A DNA stretch of 64,000 bases from Macrostomum lignano (taxonomy: Eukaryota): contig NIVC01001100.1 of NCBI GenBank assembly GCA_002269645.1, positions 186,001-250,000 on the forward strand, read 5' to 3'. Below the pieces are notes generated by a model. It searched no databases. It had not been told where the DNA came from and saw nothing but the letters and a program-made list of their open reading frames with translations. Below are positions 3,767 to 58,234 of this stretch, piece after piece. The position numbers and the translations under genes are program-made. Numbering within the stretch: the stretch's first letter is position 1; each line of letters begins with the position of its first letter.

Positions 3767-6700
3767 GTGAATTCGGTCAAGATGTCGTTCATGCTGGCGG
3801 CGCATCAGCAGGAGGTTGAGAAATGGCTGCAGGACAACCGAGATGACGTGGAGTCAGCCGCCATCGGCTGCACTCACCAGGCGCTGCTGGTTCAGCAAAC
3901 CAAGCAGGCGGTCCTGCTGGAGGAGATCCAAGCGCTTGAGAGCAGGCTGGACGAGTCCAACAAGTCAGCGGCAGCGTCCCTCACCAAGCTGAAGGCAATG
4001 GAGAGTCAGATTGGCGTGAACCAGCAGGCGCTGACTTACCTTCAGCAGGTGACGTCGCTTGAGACGGCATTCGTGTCCACGGGTCAGAAAGTGATGGAGA
4101 AGGCACTGCAGATGTCCAAAGTGACCGATGGAGTCGTCCTGGAAGCTAAGAAGGTGAGAAAAGAGCCTTCATTTTATTGACAGTACATGAACGAGTCAAG
4201 GACAACTGAAGCAACGTCTATACAGGACGCTGCACTCGAAATCGATGGAAAATGTTTTGAAGGCCACTTTTTGCCGAAAAATACACTACGGAGATAGGAA
4301 GTTTTAATTTTTTAAGCTTTAGCTTCAGCTTCGTGCAGAAAATTAGAATTTACTAGCAATCTAGTGCGGCCCCCCTTCGGGGCGCCCAATAAGAAAGGAG
4401 CAAAAATAGTTCATGGAAAACAATAAAAAAACACATTTTCTTAAACACTAATTCCTTCTTCACATTTTAAAAATCACCTTATTCGTGTAAAATTGTCACG
4501 GACTAAGATGTTTGCAAAATTAAAAAATCACTTTTTCTCTAAAATTAACAAACAGTCAACAAAATATCGTTTCACTAAATAGAAAATATTCCCAAGACAG
4601 CAAGCAACCCCCTCCAAAAGTGAACAATCGCAGATAGCAAGCATCCTCTAATGCTCATAGCAAGAATCACCACAGATAGCAAGCATCTGCAGATTAGCAA
4701 GCACCCCCCAGATATTATAGAAGCATCCACCCAGATAGCAAGCATCCTGCAGATAGCAAGAATCCCTAAATAGCAAGCATCCTGCAGATAGCAAGAATCC
4801 CTGAATAGCAAGCATCCCTGGATAGAAAGAATCCCATGCATGTAGCCAGTACCCCCTCTCCCAAATAGCAAGTATCCCCCCTCGAGAGCAAGCATCCACG
4901 AGACAGCAAGTAGCTAGTGCAAATGTTACTTCCGCTAATGCAATAATCGCTTTCTCAGGTTGTGCAACAATCCACGTCTCAGCGAGCGCAATAATCTCTT
5001 TTTTAGACAGCGCAGTAATCAGCTTCTCAGCTAGTGCAATAATCCTTGGTTTATTAATAGCAATAATCCTTGATTAATCAAGTGCAATAATCCTTGGTTT
5101 ATCAAGTGCAATAATACTTGGTTTATCAAGTGCAGTAATCTTTGGCTTATCAAGTGCAATAATCCTTGGTTTATCAAGTGCAATAATCCTTTGTTTATCA
5201 AGTGCAATAATCCTTGGTTTATCAAGTGCAATAATCCTTGGTTTATCAAGTGCAATAATCCTTGGTTTATCAAGTGCAATAATCCTTGGTTTATCAAGTG
5301 CAATAATCCTTGGCTTATCAACTGCAATAATCCTTGGTTTATCAAGTGCAATATTTGTTTATCAAGTGCAATAATCCTTGGTTTATCAAGTGAAATAATC
5401 CTTGGTTTATCAAGTGCAATAATCCTTGGCTTATCAACTGCAATAATCCTTGGTTTATCAAGCGCAGTAATCTTTGGCCTATCAAGTGCAATAATCCTTG
5501 GTTTATCAAGTGCAGTAATCCTTGGCCTATCAAGTGCAATAATCCTTGGTTTATTAAGTGCAATAATCCTTGGTTTATCAAGTGCAATAATCCTTGGTTT
5601 ATCTAGCGCAGTAATCCTTGGCTTATCAGGTGCAATAATCCTTGGTTTATCAAGTGCAATATTTGTTTATCAAGTGCAATAATCCTTGGTTTATCAAGTG
5701 AAATAATCCTTGGTTTATCAAGTGCAATAATCCTTGGCTTATCAACTGCAATAATCCTTGGTTTATCAAGCGCAGTAATCTTTGGCCTATCAAGTGCAAT
5801 AATCCTTGGTTTATCAAGTGCAATAATCCTTGGTTTATCAAGTGCAATAATCCTTGGCTTATCAACTGCAATAATCCTTGGTTTATCAAGTGCAATAGTC
5901 CTTGGTTTATCAAGCGCAGTAATCCTTGGCCTATCAAGTGCAATAATCCTTGGCTTATCAAGTGCAATAATCCTTGGTTTATCAAGTGCAATAATCCTTG
6001 GTTTATCAAGTGCAGTAATCCTTGGCCTATCAAGTGCAATAATCCTTGGTTTGCCAAGAGCAATAATCCTTAGTTTATCGAGTGCAGTAATCCTTAGTTT
6101 TCCAAGTGCAGTAATCCTTGGTTTATTAAGAGCAATAATCCTTGGCTTATCGAGTGCAGTAATCCTTGGTTTGCCAAGAGCAATAATCCTTGGTTTATCA
6201 AGTGCAATAATCCTTGGTTTATCAAGTGCAATAATCCTTGGTTTATCAAGTGCAATAATCCTTGGTTTATCAGATGCAATAATCCTTGGCTTATCAACTG
6301 CAATAATCCTTGGTTTATCAGATGCAATAATCCTTGGCTTATCAACTGCAATAATCCTTGGTTTATCAAGTGCAATAATCCTTGGTTTATCAAGCGCAGT
6401 AATCTTTGGCCTATCAAGTGCAATAATCCTTGGTTTATCAAGTGCAATAATCCTTGGTTTATCAAGTGCAATAATCTTTGGTTTATCAGATGCAATAATC
6501 CTTGGCTTATCAACTGCAATAATCCTTGGTTTATCAAGTGCAATAATCCTTGGCTTATCAAGTGCAATAATCCTTGGTTTATCAAGCGCAGTAATCTTTG
6601 GCCTATCAAGTGCAATAATCCTTGGTTTATCAAGTGCAGTAATCCTTGGCCTATCAAGTGCAATAATCCTTGGTTTATCAAGTGCAATAGTCTTTGGTTT

Positions 6701-48338: not shown

Positions 48339-48896
48339 ATGGGCGTCTGGCTATCAAAACTGCTGGAGAATTTCGCCGACGGCCCGCCGGCCCGGGTGCT
48401 GATGCTGGGCCTAGACGCGGCAGGCAAGACCACCATCCTGTACAAGGTGAAGCTCAACGAGACGGTCACCACAATTCCCACAATCGGCTTCAACGTTGAA
48501 GAGGTCAGGCCCTGCAAAGGCGTCAGCTTCACTGTCTGGGACGTCGGCGGCCAGGAACGGATCCGCGCCCTGTGGCGGCACTACTACCAGAACTCTGAAG
48601 GCCTGCTGTTCATCGTCGACTCCGCCGATCGCGAGAGATTCGCCGAGGCCCGCCAGGAGCTCCTGGGCGTGCTGGAGGCGGACGAGATGCGCCGAGTCCC
48701 TGTGGTGGTGGTCGCCAACAAGCAGGACCTGCCGCATGCCGTCAGCGTGTCGGAGCTGGCCGGAGCTCTGGGGCTACACAAGCTGACTGGCCGGCAGTGG
48801 CACATCCAGGGCGCCACGGCCACGACAGGCGACGGCATCTACGAATCCATGCATGAGCTCAGCCGGCTGGTCAAGGAGTTCCGGCGAACTCGCTGA
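48339..48896 (+). CDS. ADP-ribosylation factor family small GTPase, intronless, 185 aa
   Basis: MG start (myristoylation Gly2), [35 protein letters not shown]. Subfamily not assignable by eye. Confidence 0.95.
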
Positions 48897-49592: not shown

Positions 49593-50084
49593 TAGTCTAG
49601 CAAATATTTAACTTAATAATAATTAACAAGACATTTTGGAACCTGTGTACGAACTCTTTCACACCATACAAAGATGGTTTTCAGAATCTGCTTGTATTCC
49701 TTATCTTACGTTCCGCATAGCAACTAATGTATATTTAACTGTTTTCAAATACTAGATCGATTAATCACATATTACATGAAGCAAATAGAAATACAGCAAG
49801 TGTACATAAGCATAATTACAAAAGTACATTAGTATAATAAATATGATCAGTCTCATAATTTATATAGTACTTTTTTCGTGTATTTTTCATTAAGCGAAAG
49901 ACTCTCGGTGGGTTGGATTTTTCAAAGCAAGAATGAATTTAATGGGCGGAGAATCACACAAAGCATTCGCGATGATCAAACTCTATGAATGAAATCGAAT
50001 CAAATATATTCATTTTTGTGATGAGCAAAAATGTTACAGATGGCAACTTCTCTAATACTGCAGTTTGTAGACAGTAGATTTTGA

Positions 50085-51200
50085 TGATGGCAGTTTGTAG
50101 ACAGTAGATTTTGATGATGGCAGATTTTAGACGGTAGATTTTGATGATGGCAGATTTTAGACAGTAGATTTTGTTGATGGCAGATTTTAGACGGTAGATT
50201 TTGTTGATGGCAGATTTTAGACGGTAGATTTTGATGGCAGATTTTAGACGGTAGATTTTGTTGATGGCAGATTTTAGACGGTAGATTTTGATGATGGCAG
50301 ATTTTAGACGGTAGATTTTGATGATGGCAGATTTTAGACGGTAGATTTTGATGATGGCAGATTTTAGACAGTAGATTTTGATGATGGCAGATTTTAGACG
50401 GTAGATTTTGATGATGGCAGATTTTAGACGGTAGATTTTGATGATGGCAGATTTTAGACGGTAGATTTTGATGATGGCAGATTTTAGACGGTAGATTTTG
50501 ATGATGGCAGATTTTAGACGGTAGATTTTGATGATGGCAGATTTTAGACGGTAGATTTTGATGATGGCAGATTTTAGACGGTAGATTTTGTTGATGGCAG
50601 ATTTTAGACAGTAGATTTTGATGATGGCAGATTTTAGACGGTAGATTTTGATGATGGCAGATTTTAGACGGTAGATTTTGATGATGGCAGATTTTAGACG
50701 GTAGATTTTGATGATGGCAGATTTTAGACGGTAGATTTTGATGATGGCAGATTTTAGACGGTAGATTTTGATGATGGCAGATTTTAGACGGTAGATTTTG
50801 ATGATGGCAGATTTTAGACGGTAGATTTTGATGATGGCAGATTTTAGACGGTAGATTTTGATGATGGCAGATTTTAGACAGTAGATTTTGTTGATGGCAG
50901 ATTTTAGACAGTAGATTTTGATGATGGCAGATTTTAGACGGTAGATTTTGATGATGGCAGATTTTAGACAGTAGATTTTGACGATGGCAGATTTTAGACG
51001 GTAGATTTTGATGATGGCAGATTTTAGACAGTAGATTTCGATGATGGCAGATTTTAGACGGTAGATTTTGATGATGAAAGATTTTAGACGGTAGATTTTG
51101 ATGATGGCAGATTTTAGACAGTAGATTTTGATGATGGCAGATTTTAGACGGTAGATTTCGATGATGGCAGATTTTAGACAGTAGATTTTGATGATGAAAG
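50085..51200. repeat. 30-bp minisatellite (GTAGATTTTGATGATGGCAGATTTTAGACG)n, about 37 copies
   Basis: Direct tandem array; source of the HHQNLPSKIC ORF. Confidence 0.97.
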
Positions 51201-51629
51201 ATACTCATAACAAATTTAGATGGCCCAATCGAGGTCAGACTTAATAGCAAAATGAATGGCCCTGACGACAGAAAGCAAGTCGCAAAATTGACAGAAACAA
51301 GAAAAAAATCCGGTGAGTCATGGAGACCCAGACCAACAAGCAACACAAGAACAATGCCAAGAACTCAGGGGGGAATCCGATGAATGAAAAATAAATGTTC
51401 GAATTCATGTTTAAACAAAACTGATACAAATTGCGCCTGCAGATTAAAAAACAAGCCCATTTTATGCGAAACCTGTAGACAGAAGACAGGTGTGAGCATA
51501 AATTTTTGAGCACTGTTGACCAAGCCTTGACATTAGGAAGGATTAGCAAAGAATCCCGAGGATTAGGGATAATTTATGGGTAATTCATTTAATTAAAAGG
51601 ATTAGCGAATAGTCCAGGAGATTAGCAAG

Positions 51630-51992
51630 GATTAGCGGTTAATCCTGGAGATTAGGGAGGATTACCGGTTAATCCTGGGGATTAGGGAGGACTAGCGGTT
51701 AATCCTGAGGATTGGGGAGGACTAGCGGTTAATCCTGAGGATTAGGGAGGACTAGCGGTTAATTCGGGAGATTAGGAAGGTTTCGTGCGTAGTCCTGGAC
51801 ATAAGGAGGGATTAGCGGTTAATCCTGGGGATTAGGGAGGATTAGCGGTTAATCCTGGGGATTAGGGAGGATTAGCGGTTAATCCTGGGGATTAGGGAGG
51901 ATTAGCGGTTAATCCTGGGGATTAAGGATTAGTGATTAGTCCTGGGGATTAGGGAGGATTAGCGGTTAATCCTGGAGACTAGGGAGGATTAG
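51630..51992. repeat. 30-bp minisatellite (GATTAGGGAGGATTAGCGGTTAATCCTGGG)n
   Basis: Direct tandem array with TTAGGG and an internal AGGATTA/TAATCCT inverted repeat. Confidence 0.93.
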
Positions 51993-52109
51993 CAAATAAA
52001 CCTGGTTTTCAAGGTGGACTAGCAACTCAGCAAAGAGATCTGAGAATGCTAAGAGAATGATAAAAATGGCCAGACGAGGCCAGACGAGCATGGCCAGACG
52101 AGGCGAACA

Positions 52110-52626
52110 TCAAAGAAACACGTATTCGTCAGTAGACAGAGTGGCGTAGCCATCGCTGTGAAAGCTGATCTGGTGCACCCGCAGCAGGGACTCCTCCAGC
52201 TCAGTGTAGGACTCGTGCTCCCGCTGGCTGGCGTCTGTACCGATGGAGAAAAGCGGCAGGGCGGTGGCCGCTGCCGAGTAGGATCCACTGGCGCTGGCCG
52301 CCGCTGCTCGATCCTGCGGGCTGGCCGCGCAGACGTCAACGCGCCGAAGGAAGCTGTCGGCTTCGGGCCAGGAGCGCAGCAGGAAGCCCAGGGCGCAGCT
52401 GGGGTCCAGCTCGGGCAGGCGCACCAGCCTTGGTCGGGCTCGGTAGTGCAGGCCGGGGCCCGCGCTGGCCGGCTCGCACACGTGCGGGTCCAGGTATAGC
52501 AGCCGGTCGCCTTGGTAACCGAATATGTAAACAGAGTGGCGGGGCCGGCCGCCCAGCATGCCGACGCAGGCCTCGTCGCCTAGGAGAACCTGGCCGTTAA
52601 AAGAATGGAATGTTGAGAGAAGCGGC

Positions 52627-52659
<33 letters not shown>

Positions 52660-52670
52660 GCCTGCCTGCC

Positions 52671-52719
<49 letters not shown>

Positions 52720-52778
52720 GTCTGTCTGTCTGTCTCTCTGCCTGCCTGCCTGTCTGTCTGTCTCTCTGCCTGCCTGCC

Positions 52779-52811
<33 letters not shown>

Positions 52812-52818
52812 GCCTGCC

Positions 52819-52855
<37 letters not shown>

Positions 52856-52862
52856 GCCTGCC

Positions 52863-52899
<37 letters not shown>

Positions 52900-55637
52900 G
52901 CCTGCCTGCCTGTCTTTCTGTCTGCCTGTCTGTCTGTCTGTCTGTCTGTCTATCTGCCTGTCTGTCTGCCTGTCTGTCTGTCTGTCTGTCTGCCTCTGCC
53001 TGTCTGTCCGTCTGCCTCTGTCTATCTGTCTGTCTGTCTCTCTGTCTGTCTCTGTTTGTCTGTCTGACTGACTGTCTGTGCCTGCCTGTCTGCCTCTGTC
53101 TGTCTGTCTGTCTGTCTCTGTTTGTCTGTCTGTCTGTCTGTATGTCTGACTGACTGTCTGTGCCTGCCTGTCTGCCTCTGTCTATCTGTATCTAAGCCCC
53201 ATGTCAGTCGGGCCGCCTCCTCACCTGCAGCGCGGCCAGGTACATGGGGTTGGCCTGGCGGGCCCCGCCCAGCCAGAGCGGCAGCAGCAGCAGCACGGCC
53301 CGATTGTCACGGAACGCGTTGGGTCGCAGCATCTCGGCCAGCTGGTCCCGGTTGATGCAGGACTGCCGGGCCACCAGCACGCTCAGCGTGGCCAGCATCG
53401 GCTCGTAGGACGCCTCCTTGATGCAGAGGGTGTTGCATCGGTTTCTTTCATTTCGACTCGAATGCTGATACCCTCCTCAATACTGCGTCTGCAAACCTGA
53501 ATCTAGTCTAGCCTCTCTATTGGTTTAAGTCCCCGAATGGATATAAAAAATTCTCGCTTTGTGGCATTAGACTTTCAGTATTAGGGATCAGAATCCCATG
53601 AAAGGGAACCAGAATCTTATGTAAGGGATCAGAATCCCATATAAGGGGATCAAATCAAAATCCCATGAAAGGGGATTAGAATCCCAAGAATCAGAATCCC
53701 ATGAAAGGGGATTAGAATCCCAAGAATCAGAATCCCATGAAAGGGGATCAGAATCCCATGAAAGGGGATCAGAATCCCAGCAGGGGTGATCAGAGTCCCA
53801 TCATAGGGAATCAGAATCCCATCAAAGGGGATCAGAATCCCATCAAAGGGGATCAGAATCTCATCAAAGGGGATCAGAATCTTATCAAAGGGGATTAGAA
53901 TCCCATCAAAGGGGATCAGAATCCCATCAAAAGGATCAGAATCCCATGAAAGGGGATCAGAATCTCATGAAAGGGGATCAGAATCTCATCAAAGGGATCA
54001 GAATCCCATCAAAGGGGATCAGAATCCCTTGAAAGGGATCAGAATCCCATGAAAGGGATCAGAATCCCATGAAAGGGATCAGAATCCCATGAAAGGGGAT
54101 CAGAATCCCATCCTAGGTAATCAGTAATTCGAGTCGCACCTGCACAGCCTGTCGAACAGCCTCGGCAGCGGTGGCGGGCCCGATGAACCGGCCGGGGGGA
54201 GCACCGCTAGCGCACTGGAGCAGCCGACGCAGCGACAACTGGCCGGTGCTTTCGTTGAACAGATTCAACAGCTGGCCAACCAGCTGCTGACCGGCAGGCT
54301 GCTGCCTCTGCCGCTGCTCCTGCTGCACTCGCCAGCCTCTGCCGAGATGAAGCATCTGCAGCGCGTTGCCAAGCAGCATCTGAGCGCAACGGTACATGCA
54401 GCCCCAGCCGGCGTCTGTGCTGAACTGCCGGCGGCCGATGACTTCTCTGGCGCCACTGCCGCTCTTGGCCATGTTCGACTGCTGGGGCGACAGCACGATT
54501 GGCTCGAAATTCTTCCTGTGATGTTAATATGCGCAGTTATATAATACTTGAAGTTGTATATTACTGACAGTAGAGCAAGAGAATTTTCAAGATAAAAATT
54601 CACAACACGATTCTTAAACTTTTTAAACAGGGCGATTATCTCTCAGGGCGATTCTTAAAAACTCTTAGGGCGATTCTCAAGAACCCTTAGGGCGATTCCT
54701 AAACTCTCAGGGCGATTCTAAAAACTCTCATCAGGGGATTCCTAAACTCTCAGGGCGATTCTAAAAACTCTCATCAGGGGATTCCTAAAATGTCTCAGGG
54801 CGATTCTAAAAACTCTCATCAGGGGATTCCTAAAATGTCTCAGGGCGATTCTTAAAATATTTCAGGGCGATTCCTGAAAACTCTCGGGGCGATTCTGAAA
54901 AACTCTCAGGGCGATTCTGAAAAACTCTCAGGGCGATTCTGAAAAACTCTCAGGGCGATTCTGAAAAACTCTCAGGGCGATGCTTAAAAACTCTTTTGGC
55001 GATTTCTTTAAACTATTAAAAAGATTGTTTTAAACCTTCAGAAAATACAGAAATATTTTCAGGGGATGTGTGATGCACGGGAGCGAAGCATTTTAAAAAA
55101 CCTGCGATTCCGAAGGGGGGATTCTCACCTGTAGCAGGCAAAAAACCGCGAGCCCATATCGGAGGCGAGCTGCTTGGTCTGGTCTGGCTGGTTCGTATCA
55201 TAGAAAGCGCCCAGGCAGCAAACCGGCTGAGACTTGGACAATCTGAGACCTGTGCTCAAATTCAACGAGTACCGAAACGAGTTCCACAGGTCTGACACCG
55301 TGTCTTTGAGTTGTTGCTGCTGCTGTTGCTGCTGCTGTTGCTGACGCCGCGGCTGCTGCAACGACTCGGCGCACGAAGAGGAACGGCGCAACGACTGAAC
55401 TGGCGCGCTCGTAGGCGAAGAAGAGATGTTGAAGTTCGAAGCTGATGGGGCGGCATCCCAGCCTCCGCAATTGCTTCCACCTCTTTCGCCTTTGGAGTCG
55501 AACTCGTAAACGTCGTAGCCGTTGCGACTGCGATCGACCTGCACGAAGGTGCCGCCGTCCGGTAGGTGGCGCTGCTGCCGATACAGCTGCACTGAGGCTG
55601 CGGCCTCGCTAGGAGGCTCAAACCCGTTAAAGGTTGC
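52110..55637 (-). CDS. ATG4: Cysteine protease ATG4 (C/D-like), 4 coding exons, about 518 aa; start codon unresolved
   Basis: Exons 55129-55637, 54140-54515, 53225-53416 (acceptor uncertain), 52110-52589. Motifs: [24 protein letters not shown] (catalytic Cys), GGRPRHS, YLDPH (catalytic Asp/His), [10 protein letters not shown]-terminal LIR-like DEYVFL. Confidence 0.92.
52627..53190. repeat. (TGTC)n / (TGCC)n microsatellite
   Basis: Imperfect tetranucleotide run in ATG4 intron 3. Confidence 0.97.
53585..54110. repeat. 20-21-bp minisatellite (GGGATCAGAATCCCATGAAAG)n
   Basis: Direct tandem array; each unit contains a GGGAT/ATCCC inverted repeat. Confidence 0.95.
54625..55005. repeat. About 22-bp minisatellite (CAGGGCGATTCTGAAAAACTCT)n
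   Basis: Direct tandem array. Confidence 0.93.
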
Positions 55638-55667
55638 CTGGAGAATACAATTGGGATGGGATGTAAA

Positions 55668-55995
55668 TCACAGGTATGGGACTGGGATTCACAGGTATGG
55701 TACTGGGAATCACAGGTATGGGACTGGGATTCACAGGTATGGGACTGGGATTCACAGGTATGGGACTGGGATTCACAGGTATGGGACTGGGATTCACAGG
55801 TATGGGACTGGGAATCGCTTGTATGGGACTGGAAATCACCGGTATGGGACTGGGAATCACAGGTATGGGACTGGCAATCACAGGTACGGGACTGGGATTC
55901 ACAGGTATGGGACTGGGAATCACAGGTATGGGACTGGGAATTACAGTTATAGGACTGGGAATCATAGGTATAGGACCGAGATTCACAGGTATAGA
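55668..55995. repeat. 21-bp minisatellite (ACAGGTATGGGACTGGGATTC)n
   Basis: Direct tandem array between RPL9 and ATG4. Confidence 0.95.
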
Positions 55996-56169
55996 TGGGA
56001 CTTAGATTCGCTAATCTGGGACTCGAAGCTACTCGAAGATTAACGAGACAATATCCTTTTTAAACTTACGACCACAGATGCTAAACATGCTCATCATTAG
56101 TTCAAGCAAGGAGTTTACAAAGAAGCCAAAGCATAAGTCAAGAATTGCAATTTTTCTTAATCCAACGAT

Positions 56170-56175
56170 TTTATT
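56170..56175 (-). terminator. Putative polyadenylation signal of RPL9
   Basis: AATAAA on the minus strand about 100 nt after the RPL9 stop. Confidence 0.6.
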
Positions 56176-56276
56176 ATCGGCTAATCAGCAGGCTCGCTCT
56201 AATAGGCCAAGCTTAAATCCTTAGCAACCTGATGGGCACCAGTCAGTCCGGCAATCCGAAAATCGAGTCAATCAAT

Positions 56277-56849
56277 TCAATCGTCAGCCTCGGTCACGGT
56301 GGTCTTCTCGCTAACGTAGACGCCATCAAGGAATTTTCGGATGTCCTTGTTCTTCACGCAGCAGCACTGCTGGATCAGAGCGGCAGCGTGGCTGACGGCC
56401 TCGACATCGTTGCCTTCAAGCTGGATCTCGTCCTTGACGCCAGTCTGGGACACGGTGACACCGCGCAGCATGTTCACCGTCCGGTTGTTCTTCTCGCCGA
56501 GGAAGTTGCGAATCTCGATGGAGTCGCCGGCCTTGCTGATCACCATGTTGATGGGGAAGTGGGCGTACACGGACTTCATCTTGTAGCGGAAGCCGTAGGT
56601 GACGCCCTTGATCATGTTGCGCACGTGGGTGATGACGGTGCGCACCGCGGCCAGCTCCTTGTGCACGCCGAACCACTTCTCCACGGTCAGTGTGCGCCCG
56701 TTCGGAGACACTTTGATGTCGAGCGACAGGTGGCGGAAAGAGCGGGACAGAGCGCCTCGCTTGCCCTTGACGCGAACCAGGCGCGAGTTCGCGGTCACTG
56801 TGACACCCTCAGGGATCTTCAGGCTGAGCGAGGATTTGATCACCTTCAT
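56277..56849 (-). CDS. RPL9: 60S ribosomal protein L9 (uL6), single coding exon, 190 aa
   Basis: KWFGVHKELAAVRT, GFRYKMKSVYAHFPIN, IRNFLGEK, KNKDIRKFLDGVYVSEK; intact ORF with GC3 bias; CAG acceptor 5 nt before the ATG. Confidence 0.97.
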   Translation of the reverse strand: MKVIKSSLSLKIPEGVTVTANSRLVRVKGKRGALSRSFRHLSLDIKVSPNGRTLTVEKWFGVHKELAAVRTVITHVRNMIKGVTYGFRYKMKSVYAHFPINMVISKAGDSIEIRNFLGEKNNRTVNMLRGVTVSQTGVKDEIQLEGNDVEAVSHAAALIQQCCCVKNKDIRKFLDGVYVSEKTTVTEADD

Positions 56850-56904
56850 GATGACTGCATGGGATGTAGCATGAGGATGCTGAGTGAGGCTGTGTTATTC
56901 CTAC

Positions 56905-57243
56905 ACACAAGGAACAGACCTCAAAACTCGTGAATATTGGCCATAAAAATGGTCTCTTACACTAGGAACAGACATCAAAACTCGTGAATATTGGCCATAA
57001 AAATGGTCTCTTACACCAGGAACAGACCTCAAAACTCGTGAATATTGGCCATAAAAATGGTCTCTTACACTAGGAACAGACATCAAAACTCGTGAATATT
57101 GGCGATAAAGGTGGTCTCTTACACAAGGAACAGACCTCAAAACTCGTGAATATTGGCCATAAAGGTGGTCTCTTACACAAGGAACAGACCTCAAAACTCG
57201 TGAATATTGGCCATAAAGATGGTCTCTTACACAAGGAACAGAC
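56905..57243. repeat. 54-bp minisatellite, about 6 copies
   Basis: Units start at 56911, 56965, 57019 and onward. Confidence 0.95.
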
Positions 57244-58234
57244 CCTAATCCTTGACTAGGATTGATTATGAATATTAATCATAAATAATCACTATTTGAG
57301 CTAAGGCTAACACTATTTAGATAGTATTTAAATATATATTTTTAAATAGGCTATAAAAACATAAATGTTAATAAACCAAATTACAAACTAGGCTATCAAT
57401 ATTATAAAATCCGTATTACTAAATGGCCATTAACCAAACCAAACATATTCTCTTTGTTATAGTATATTTGTAACTAAAAGCAAAGCAACTTGTAATCAAA
57501 ATGACTATTTGCCCAGGTGAAATTCATCCCAAAAAATGACATGTTCTGCATAAAAAGTAAAAAATTAAAAGTGCATGTGAATAAAAAACATGAAAATAAA
57601 TTGGCACTAAAGGAGCTTTAGTAATTTAATATTAGTGCTAATATTACTATTGCTACATTTAATTCCAATAATATATCATGTACTTTTCTGGCAAAAATCC
57701 ACTATTCTGTGCACCTTTCTTGGTCAACATTTTTGTTTTACATGCTTGATTTATGAAATATATACTAGACTATTTGTCATTAAAATGTCTATTATCAAAA
57801 CAAAATGACTTCTTACTAAAACAACCAAAACCTATTTTGGGAATCCTGATTGCTAAGATAGAATCTTTGCGTGGTGATTTTACACACAACTTCTCTGGTA
57901 GCCAAAAAATGTTCTTGTGTGGCTGGTGTATCCACGAGACTATGGTCAACAATATGTATATAAGTATGCAAGTTTTTTTAGTATAAGACCAAGAAGGCCA
58001 CATACCAAGATGGCTACAGCATTGAATCTCTATTATATCTAGTCTGTCTCTACTATTTATTTGTAATATAATAGCTATTGTTGCAATAATTAGCCAATTA
58101 TGTCTAATCAATTATATTTATAAAATATTAGTATAATATTAGATAATTAGATTAGAAAATAATTATCTATAATACAAAAACTTTAATGTTTTCAATGTTT
58201 GTCCCAATTTATTCCTTATCCTTACCTTAGGAAT

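Follow-up and report, generated by a model that had tools for sequence, protein, structure and literature searches.

A spliced leader as the probable source of the ATG4 start codon next to RPL9 in Macrostomum lignano

The window analyzed here is a stretch of 64,000 nucleotides from the flatworm Macrostomum lignano (contig NIVC01001100.1, positions 186,001 to 250,000) and contains, on the minus strand, a gene for the ribosomal protein RPL9 (uL6) followed by a gene for the autophagy protease ATG4. A first-pass annotation of the sequence had supposed a flatworm host with trans-splicing, and M. lignano is such a host: the window matches GCA_002269645.1 NIVC01001100.1 with 100.000% identity over 21,891 bp. 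We propose that the AUG of ATG4 is supplied by a spliced leader (SL), that RPL9 is SL-spliced as well, and that RPL9 and ATG4 form a two-gene operon. For this reading as a whole, we estimate a probability of about 75%.

RPL9 is encoded in a single exon for 190 amino acids (56849-56277, stop codon TGA at 56279-56277), with a polyadenylation signal AATAAA at 56175-56170. Its product is 65-68% identical over 97% of its length to RPL9 of trematodes and monogeneans, all with the PF00347 domain, and 93% identical to an M. lignano paralog that also carries PF00347 (P0013). ATG4 is the gene BOX15_Mlig009577g1 of assembly Mlig_3_7 (scaffold NIVC01001100.1). Its four exons are exon 1 (55637-55129), exon 2 (54515-54140, with the catalytic cysteine in GWGCM), exon 3 (53416-53225) and exon 4 (52589-52110, with the catalytic Asp/His motif YLDPH and the stop codon). 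For exon 3, an acceptor at 53464 was replaced by the one at 53416 (caag/GAGGCG, the slash marking the junction here and below), after the annotated proteins P0001 and P0012.

The ATG4 model is 96% identical to M. lignano PAA89534.1 and matches the Pfam Peptidase_C54 domain (PF03416) from residue 156 onwards with 191.9 bits (cutoff 25, E=2e-56). GWGCM and YLDPH align to the catalytic regions of human ATG4B around Cys74 and Asp278/His280. The domain and the Cys and Asp/His motifs are shared with ATG4B/ATG4A (PDB 2CY7, 2D1I, 2Z0D, 2P82), but the flatworm protein has in addition a low-complexity N-terminal extension of about 136 residues that includes a poly-Q tract, and, following the catalytic cysteine, an insert rich in Gln. 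The C-terminus, …STDEYVFL (52110-52130, minus strand), is an acidic-aromatic motif that presumably recalls the C-terminal LC3-interacting region (LIR) of human ATG4B.

The reading frame of ATG4 begins behind an in-frame TGA at 55670-55668, and codons 1-160 are devoid of methionine. The first genomic in-frame ATG is codon 161 (55157-55155, MGSRFF), the NCBI-annotated start of the gene. As the first-pass annotation had noticed, this ATG comes after conserved N-terminal sequence: the alignment with human ATG4B opens at residue 137 (SQPVCCLG versus SEPVWILG), and the Peptidase_C54 match also begins before it. M. lignano has three subgenomes (PMC10733133), and we compared the window with the other two copies of the locus, referred to as L001 (NIVC01000150.1) and L003 (NIVC01000773.1). 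Between the window and L001, exon 1 differs by 2 substitutions in 497 nt (0.4%) and one 12-nt in-frame indel in the poly-Q tract. The other ATG4 exons have 0.3-0.8% substitutions, and the non-repeat introns and upstream DNA 3.6% (32/878). No copy varies in the 51 nt from 55637 to 55587, and the GC content by codon position in codons 1-136 (0.57/0.50/0.69) is coding-like. By these sequence measures, exon 1 is coding and not a chance open reading frame (ORF). Because exon 1 is conserved, its indel is in frame and its third-position GC content is 0.69, translation must begin upstream of residue 137. The genome supplies no usable AUG for this conserved N-terminus.

A start codon from a leader is a realistic option in this organism. 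M. lignano has a single SL of 35 nt (CGGTCTCTTACTGCGAAGACTCAATTTATTGCATG, 3' end …TTGCATG), about 30% of its genes are trans-spliced, and the acceptors follow the motif [T/C]TNCAG (PMC8629364). Annotation work on Macrostomum genomes treats the terminal ATG of the SL as a start codon (PMC10468722), which bears out the earlier statement that flatworm leaders can end in an initiation-capable AUG. In Schistosoma mansoni, too, the 3'-terminal AUG of the leader acts as initiator methionine (Cheng et al., 2006, as far as this work is summarized in PMC9851317 and PMC12582326).

The window has a suitable acceptor, TATTCTCCAG (55638-55647, minus strand; tattctccAG, with the AG at 55639-55638). Its CTCCAG/G matches the published motif, and the frame opens just 10 codons upstream. 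Exon 1 begins GCAACCTTTAAC at 55637 and reads ATFNGFEPP in phase 0, as had been proposed. When the SL is joined to exon 1 in silico, the first AUG is formed by SL nucleotides 33-35, and translation from it proceeds in frame, without a stop, into the C54 domain. The 35-nt SL would then be trans-spliced onto position 55637 of the ATG4 pre-mRNA, and its terminal AUG, the first of the mRNA, would start an ATG4 protein of 519 amino acids. Acceptor, phase and missing genomic AUG together give good support to SL trans-splicing at 55637 as the event that would provide ATG4 with its start. An Rfam scan of the window gave no matches, and therefore no SL RNA gene lies within it. A search with the 93 N-terminal residues of ATG4 for transcript-derived proteins bearing the SL-encoded prefix VSYCEDSIYCM found none.

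The strongest evidence is found in the sister copy L001, which differs from the other two precisely at the ATG4 junction (L001 10001-10003). It reads TATTCTCATG (tattctcATG/GCAACC), against tattctcCAG/GCAACC in the window and in L003. Over the 79 nt from 55665 to 55587, L001 departs from the two other copies only by CA->AT at 55640-55639, and this change turns CCAG into the SL tail CATG exactly at the junction. As L001 reads ATG there, its NCBI protein (P0001) begins at this point with methionine and is full length. The Mlig_3_7 assembly was polished by Pilon with RNA-seq reads mapped by STAR, and the transcriptome-assembly step of the same study used end-to-end alignment (PMC5730564). Where reads carry a few nucleotides of the SL, mismatches would arise immediately 5' of the junction and could replace the consensus there. 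In view of the polishing with RNA-seq, the CATG of L001 is most likely an SL tail. We consider it very probable that these bases are a polishing artefact which brought the SL tail into the reference, and if so they are most likely an accidental record of SL-ATG4 transcripts. Even if it is real DNA, the L001 ATG still marks the functional start position.

A similar variation is found at the 5' end of RPL9, where we place a trans-splice junction at 56858-56862 (minus strand). The window reads C-CATG/CAGTCATC-ATG, with the CAT at 56861-56859. L003 (approximately 6451-6459) has CATCCGCAG/CAG, with CCGCAG before the junction and 0 nt of SL tail. The window has CATCCCATG/CAG, with CCCATG and 4 nt of SL tail, and L001 (8757-8765) has CATCGCATG/CAG, with CGCATG and 5 nt of SL tail. 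The sequence joined to the SL at this junction would be CAGTCATCATG. The comparison lends moderate support to SL trans-splicing of RPL9 as well, at a point 8 nt before the AUG. The SL-like bases at this site, including the CAT of the window, are probably a product of RNA-seq polishing as well, with somewhat less confidence than at ATG4. As read here, both altered junctions would be indirect RNA evidence that RPL9 and ATG4 are trans-spliced at these points.

The extent of the altered bases parallels how far each copy was polished. In L003, two C-runs have each lost a single base, at the equivalents of window position 56629 (RPL9) and near 54197 (ATG4 exon 2); these deletions frameshift RPL9 and ATG4 in that copy and are probably uncorrected long-read errors. 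With these two homopolymer deletions left uncorrected, L003 is the least polished copy. It retains AG at both junctions; the window is altered at the RPL9 junction, and L001 at both.

Other candidate footprints were discarded. The site tgtgtgtAG/G at 56902 was considered as the RPL9 trans-splice site and rejected, as L001 and L003 read TAT at that point and the bases resembling the SL vary at 56858. Two 7-mer matches to the SL tail before ATG-initiated ORFs (41890 and 36791) are either identical in L001 or without an ORF, and were attributed to chance. A scan for CATG versus AG differences between copies returned just two cases, the ATG4 site and a variant minisatellite unit; it missed the RPL9 site because BLAST aligns that site with gaps. 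Inspection of the Arf and dynein-light-chain gene starts revealed no SL footprint.

An SL-bearing RPL9 mRNA would contain an upstream ORF (uORF), AUG CAG UCA UCA UGA, with a stop codon that overlaps the RPL9 AUG (AUGA; window 56847-56857, minus strand). In a second RPL9 paralog (L004/L005, 5999-6024), the SL AUG would open a uORF of 9 codons in the same frame and with the same overlapping UGA. The arrangement suggests that RPL9 may be translated by termination-reinitiation or leaky scanning.

Both genes are on the minus strand, and between them lies only a minisatellite and no gene. The distance from the AATAAA of RPL9 to the ATG4 acceptor is 532 nt, in line with the earlier estimate of about 530 nt, and 327 of the 532 nt (61%) belong to a 21-bp minisatellite (55666-55992, period 21, 15.6 copies, 89% matches), so that most of the gap is repeat, as had been described. 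The non-repeat intercistronic segment (55993-56149, minus strand) is strongly conserved between subgenome copies, and a candidate mini-exon, taken up below, lies within it. From a likely poly(A) site at about 56150 to 55638 there are approximately 512 nt, or about 185 nt after subtraction of the 327 nt of repeat. Operons in M. lignano have been defined as same-strand neighbors, the second of them trans-spliced, with a repeat-subtracted spacer below 1 kb and a mode of approximately 100 bp (PMC8629364), and their resolution by SL trans-splicing, assumed in the first-pass annotation, is published (Ustyantsev and Berezikov, 2021). The RPL9-ATG4 pair fits these criteria on strand and repeat-adjusted spacing. 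One polycistronic RPL9-ATG4 precursor would be split by 3' cleavage of RPL9 near 56150, and SL addition at 55638 would free the ATG4 mRNA from it. Strand, spacing and gene models tip the balance slightly towards co-transcription. The missing RPL9 coding sequence (CDS) at NCBI and the fused models described below fit one uncut unit, and they also fit gene predictors lacking an ATG.

Conservation between the genes is unusually high. The RPL9 3' untranslated region (UTR) and the non-repeat spacer (55993-56276) have 1 substitution in 284 nt between copies, ten-fold below the non-coding background. The single substitution falls in the 157-nt spacer and none in the 127-nt 3'UTR, compared with 3.6% in non-repeat introns and upstream DNA. 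At 3.6%, approximately 10 substitutions would be expected in 284 nt, and by our own estimate the Poisson probability of at most one is about 4e-4. The 3'UTR and spacer may be under exon-level constraint, with processing signals, a promoter or gene conversion as candidate causes.

Several observations weigh against the proposed arrangement. For the window copy, NCBI does not give a 5'-partial CDS from 55637 onwards, and therefore the annotation pipeline did not cut the transcript there; reads multi-mapping over the three copies are possibly the cause. Cis-splicing could draw on a consensus GTAAGT donor at 56069, within the spacer. The bases that vary at the RPL9 junction also permit an alignment with two indels in the unpolished copy and one SNP, and the second RPL9 paralog (L004/L005), which is annotated as trans-spliced, has no overwriting. 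Over the window as a whole, k-mers of the SL tail (5-12 nt) show no enrichment. Finally, the L004/L005 paralog is not followed by ATG4, and an ATG4 promoter is possible in the conserved 157-nt spacer.

This last point leads to the alternative to which we concede some likelihood, clearly less than even: ATG4 may take its AUG from the SL and yet be transcribed from its own promoter in the spacer, as a monocistronic unit with a short outron and no operon. About 60% of trans-spliced M. lignano genes lie outside operons (PMC8629364), a promoter would also explain why the 157-nt spacer is conserved like coding sequence, and the normal AATAAA of RPL9 and the paralog without ATG4 downstream agree with it. 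However, the genes are about 185 nt apart after repeat subtraction, which is within the published operon mode, two independent gene-model sets fuse the genes or leave RPL9 unannotated, and transcription starting upstream of 56069 would place the consensus donor in the outron, favoring non-productive cis-splicing. That donor is central to a different proposal, put forward in the first-pass annotation as its own alternative, in which ATG4 starts in a cis-spliced mini-exon (ATGATGAGCATGTTTAGCATCTGTGGTC, 56097-56070, minus strand, phase 1) joined at 55592/55591 to give MMSMFSICG-L-QLYRQQ…. The elements are indeed present: ATGs at 56097, 56094 and 56088, the GTAAGT donor at 56069-56064, a matching phase, an in-frame acceptor AG at 55593-55592 (the first of two weak internal acceptors at 55587-55593) and an ORF that is still open in L001 and L003. 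As the ATG4 start the mini-exon is improbable. The acceptor at 55592 lacks a pyrimidine tract in its GC-rich surroundings, its use would discard the 51 invariant in-frame nucleotides 55637-55587, and splicing of the donor to the much better acceptor at 55638 would break the frame and lead to a TAA after 3 codons. Moreover, no gene model uses the mini-exon, the sole variable site (56083) is non-synonymous (Phe to Leu in L001 and L003), and the SL-like footprint is at 55638, not at 55592. No better placed is initiation at the ATG of codon 161 (55157), with a 358-aa protein and the upstream part of exon 1 as 5'UTR. It corresponds to the deposited annotation (P0012) and to a similar UniProt entry (P0002), but it would cost the protein the stretch that aligns with ATG4B 26-49, together with the Pfam profile's first 8 positions, and would leave codons 1-160 as an open frame with exon-level conservation, an in-frame 12-nt indel and coding-like GC at third positions; the sister copy is annotated at full length.

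The least plausible of the readings considered is an RPL9-ATG4 fusion protein made by read-through cis-splicing from a donor at 56297 to 55586. Two independent models on the older ML2 assembly (A0A1I8JPY0 and A0A1I8G4J3) share the in-frame junction, which joins the GT at 56297-56296 inside the RPL9 CDS (ACC/GTGACC, minus strand) to the second weak acceptor, AG 55588-55587. These models are predictions of unstated evidence, and a predictor that lacks an ATG will typically fuse a gene to its upstream neighbor; the donor is an imperfect one, GTGAC, frame errors abound in P0003, and it is biologically implausible that a ribosomal protein linked to a protease should be the main product. We regard the fusion as a prediction artefact, at most a minor by-product. 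A further question is whether the ATG of L001 (TCTCATGGCAACC) is a real allele, in which the acceptor AG mutated to a genomic start and so hard-wired the AUG previously donated by the SL. A CAG->AAG->ATG path would be functional at each step, and UniRef has three identical MATFNGF proteins. Such an allele would require two neighboring substitutions within 79 nt that are otherwise without variation, in a copy that is nearly identical to L003 (0 differences in the 327-nt minisatellite); furthermore, these substitutions yield exactly the SL tail, the RPL9 junction has an SL-like change of its own, and RNA-seq polishing of the assembly is documented. We therefore hold a real allele to be unlikely. 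If it existed, it would be a neopolyploid homeolog caught switching from SL-dependent to SL-independent initiation.

The proposed SL-supplied start also bears on public gene models. The deposited ATG4 CDS starts at the internal methionine (P0012) and is 160 residues short. At copies with CAG, the models have a truncated CDS (P0012, P0002) and others are fused to RPL9 (P0003, P0010). The C-run deletions of L003 leave NCBI with only a 217-aa C-terminal fragment there (P0011). NCBI has no RPL9 CDS annotated at any of the three copies, and an exact look-up of the RPL9 product returned no record. The gene IDs Mlig009577, Mlig003095 and Mlig000869 are absent from the searchable literature and from M. 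lignano paper supplements, and the RPL9-ATG4 pair is not named in the searchable M. lignano literature.

A different minisatellite occupies each ATG4 intron and both gene flanks (window 51560-57244). In addition to the 21-bp array between the genes, there are units of 54 bp (56905-57244), 22 bp (54640-54994) and again 21 bp (53584-54111), a CTGT-type repeat (approximately 52640-53189) and a unit of roughly 30 bp (approximately 51560-52000). A 30-bp tandem repeat at 50000-51346 (minus strand) forms a 448-codon open frame, (HHQNLPSKIC)n, which is probably a non-coding satellite rather than a gene. Convergent with ATG4, an intronless gene for an Arf-family small GTPase of 185 aa lies at 48339-48896 on the plus strand; its protein sequence is identical in two subgenome copies.

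The proposed ATG4 mRNA resembles the S. mansoni mRNAs of Cheng et al. (2006) in that the SL ends in AUG, the acceptor is at the start of the ORF, the AUG is in frame and the conserved domain is not preceded by a genomic AUG. It differs in coming from a free-living macrostomid and another gene, and in being known from genomic, indirect evidence, whereas cDNA and translation assays were available for S. mansoni. With the M. lignano operons already described (Wudarski et al., 2017; Ustyantsev and Berezikov, 2021), this locus shares the organism, the assembly, the two-gene same-strand organization, a spacer inflated by repeats (about 185 nt without them) and a downstream acceptor that fits [T/C]TNCAG. 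In contrast to catalogued operons, the RPL9-ATG4 unit was apparently left unsplit in the NCBI annotation. The arrangement is also reminiscent of SL2-type operons of Caenorhabditis elegans, with a housekeeping or ribosomal gene upstream, 3' cleavage combined with SL addition, and a short spacer. Unlike C. elegans, M. lignano has a single SL without SL2 specialization, the spacer is interrupted by a minisatellite, and the SL supplies the start codon, which nematode SLs normally do not.

The mechanism (Cheng et al., 2006) was already known, as were operons in M. lignano (Ustyantsev and Berezikov, 2021), and the locus is real but ordinary. With about 30% of M. lignano genes trans-spliced and about 15% in operons, its biological weight is small, and the regulatory link between autophagy and ribosomal-protein expression that the first-pass annotation had suggested has no support beyond adjacency. 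The use of the finding is corrective: the ATG4 product would have 519 aa, and several public gene models at the locus would be wrong. If the polishing interpretation is true, Mlig_3_7 carries SL-derived bases at some trans-splice sites, with acceptor AGs erased and start codons created that the genome does not have. Such bases would be relevant to promoter, splice-site and start-codon work on Mlig_3_7.

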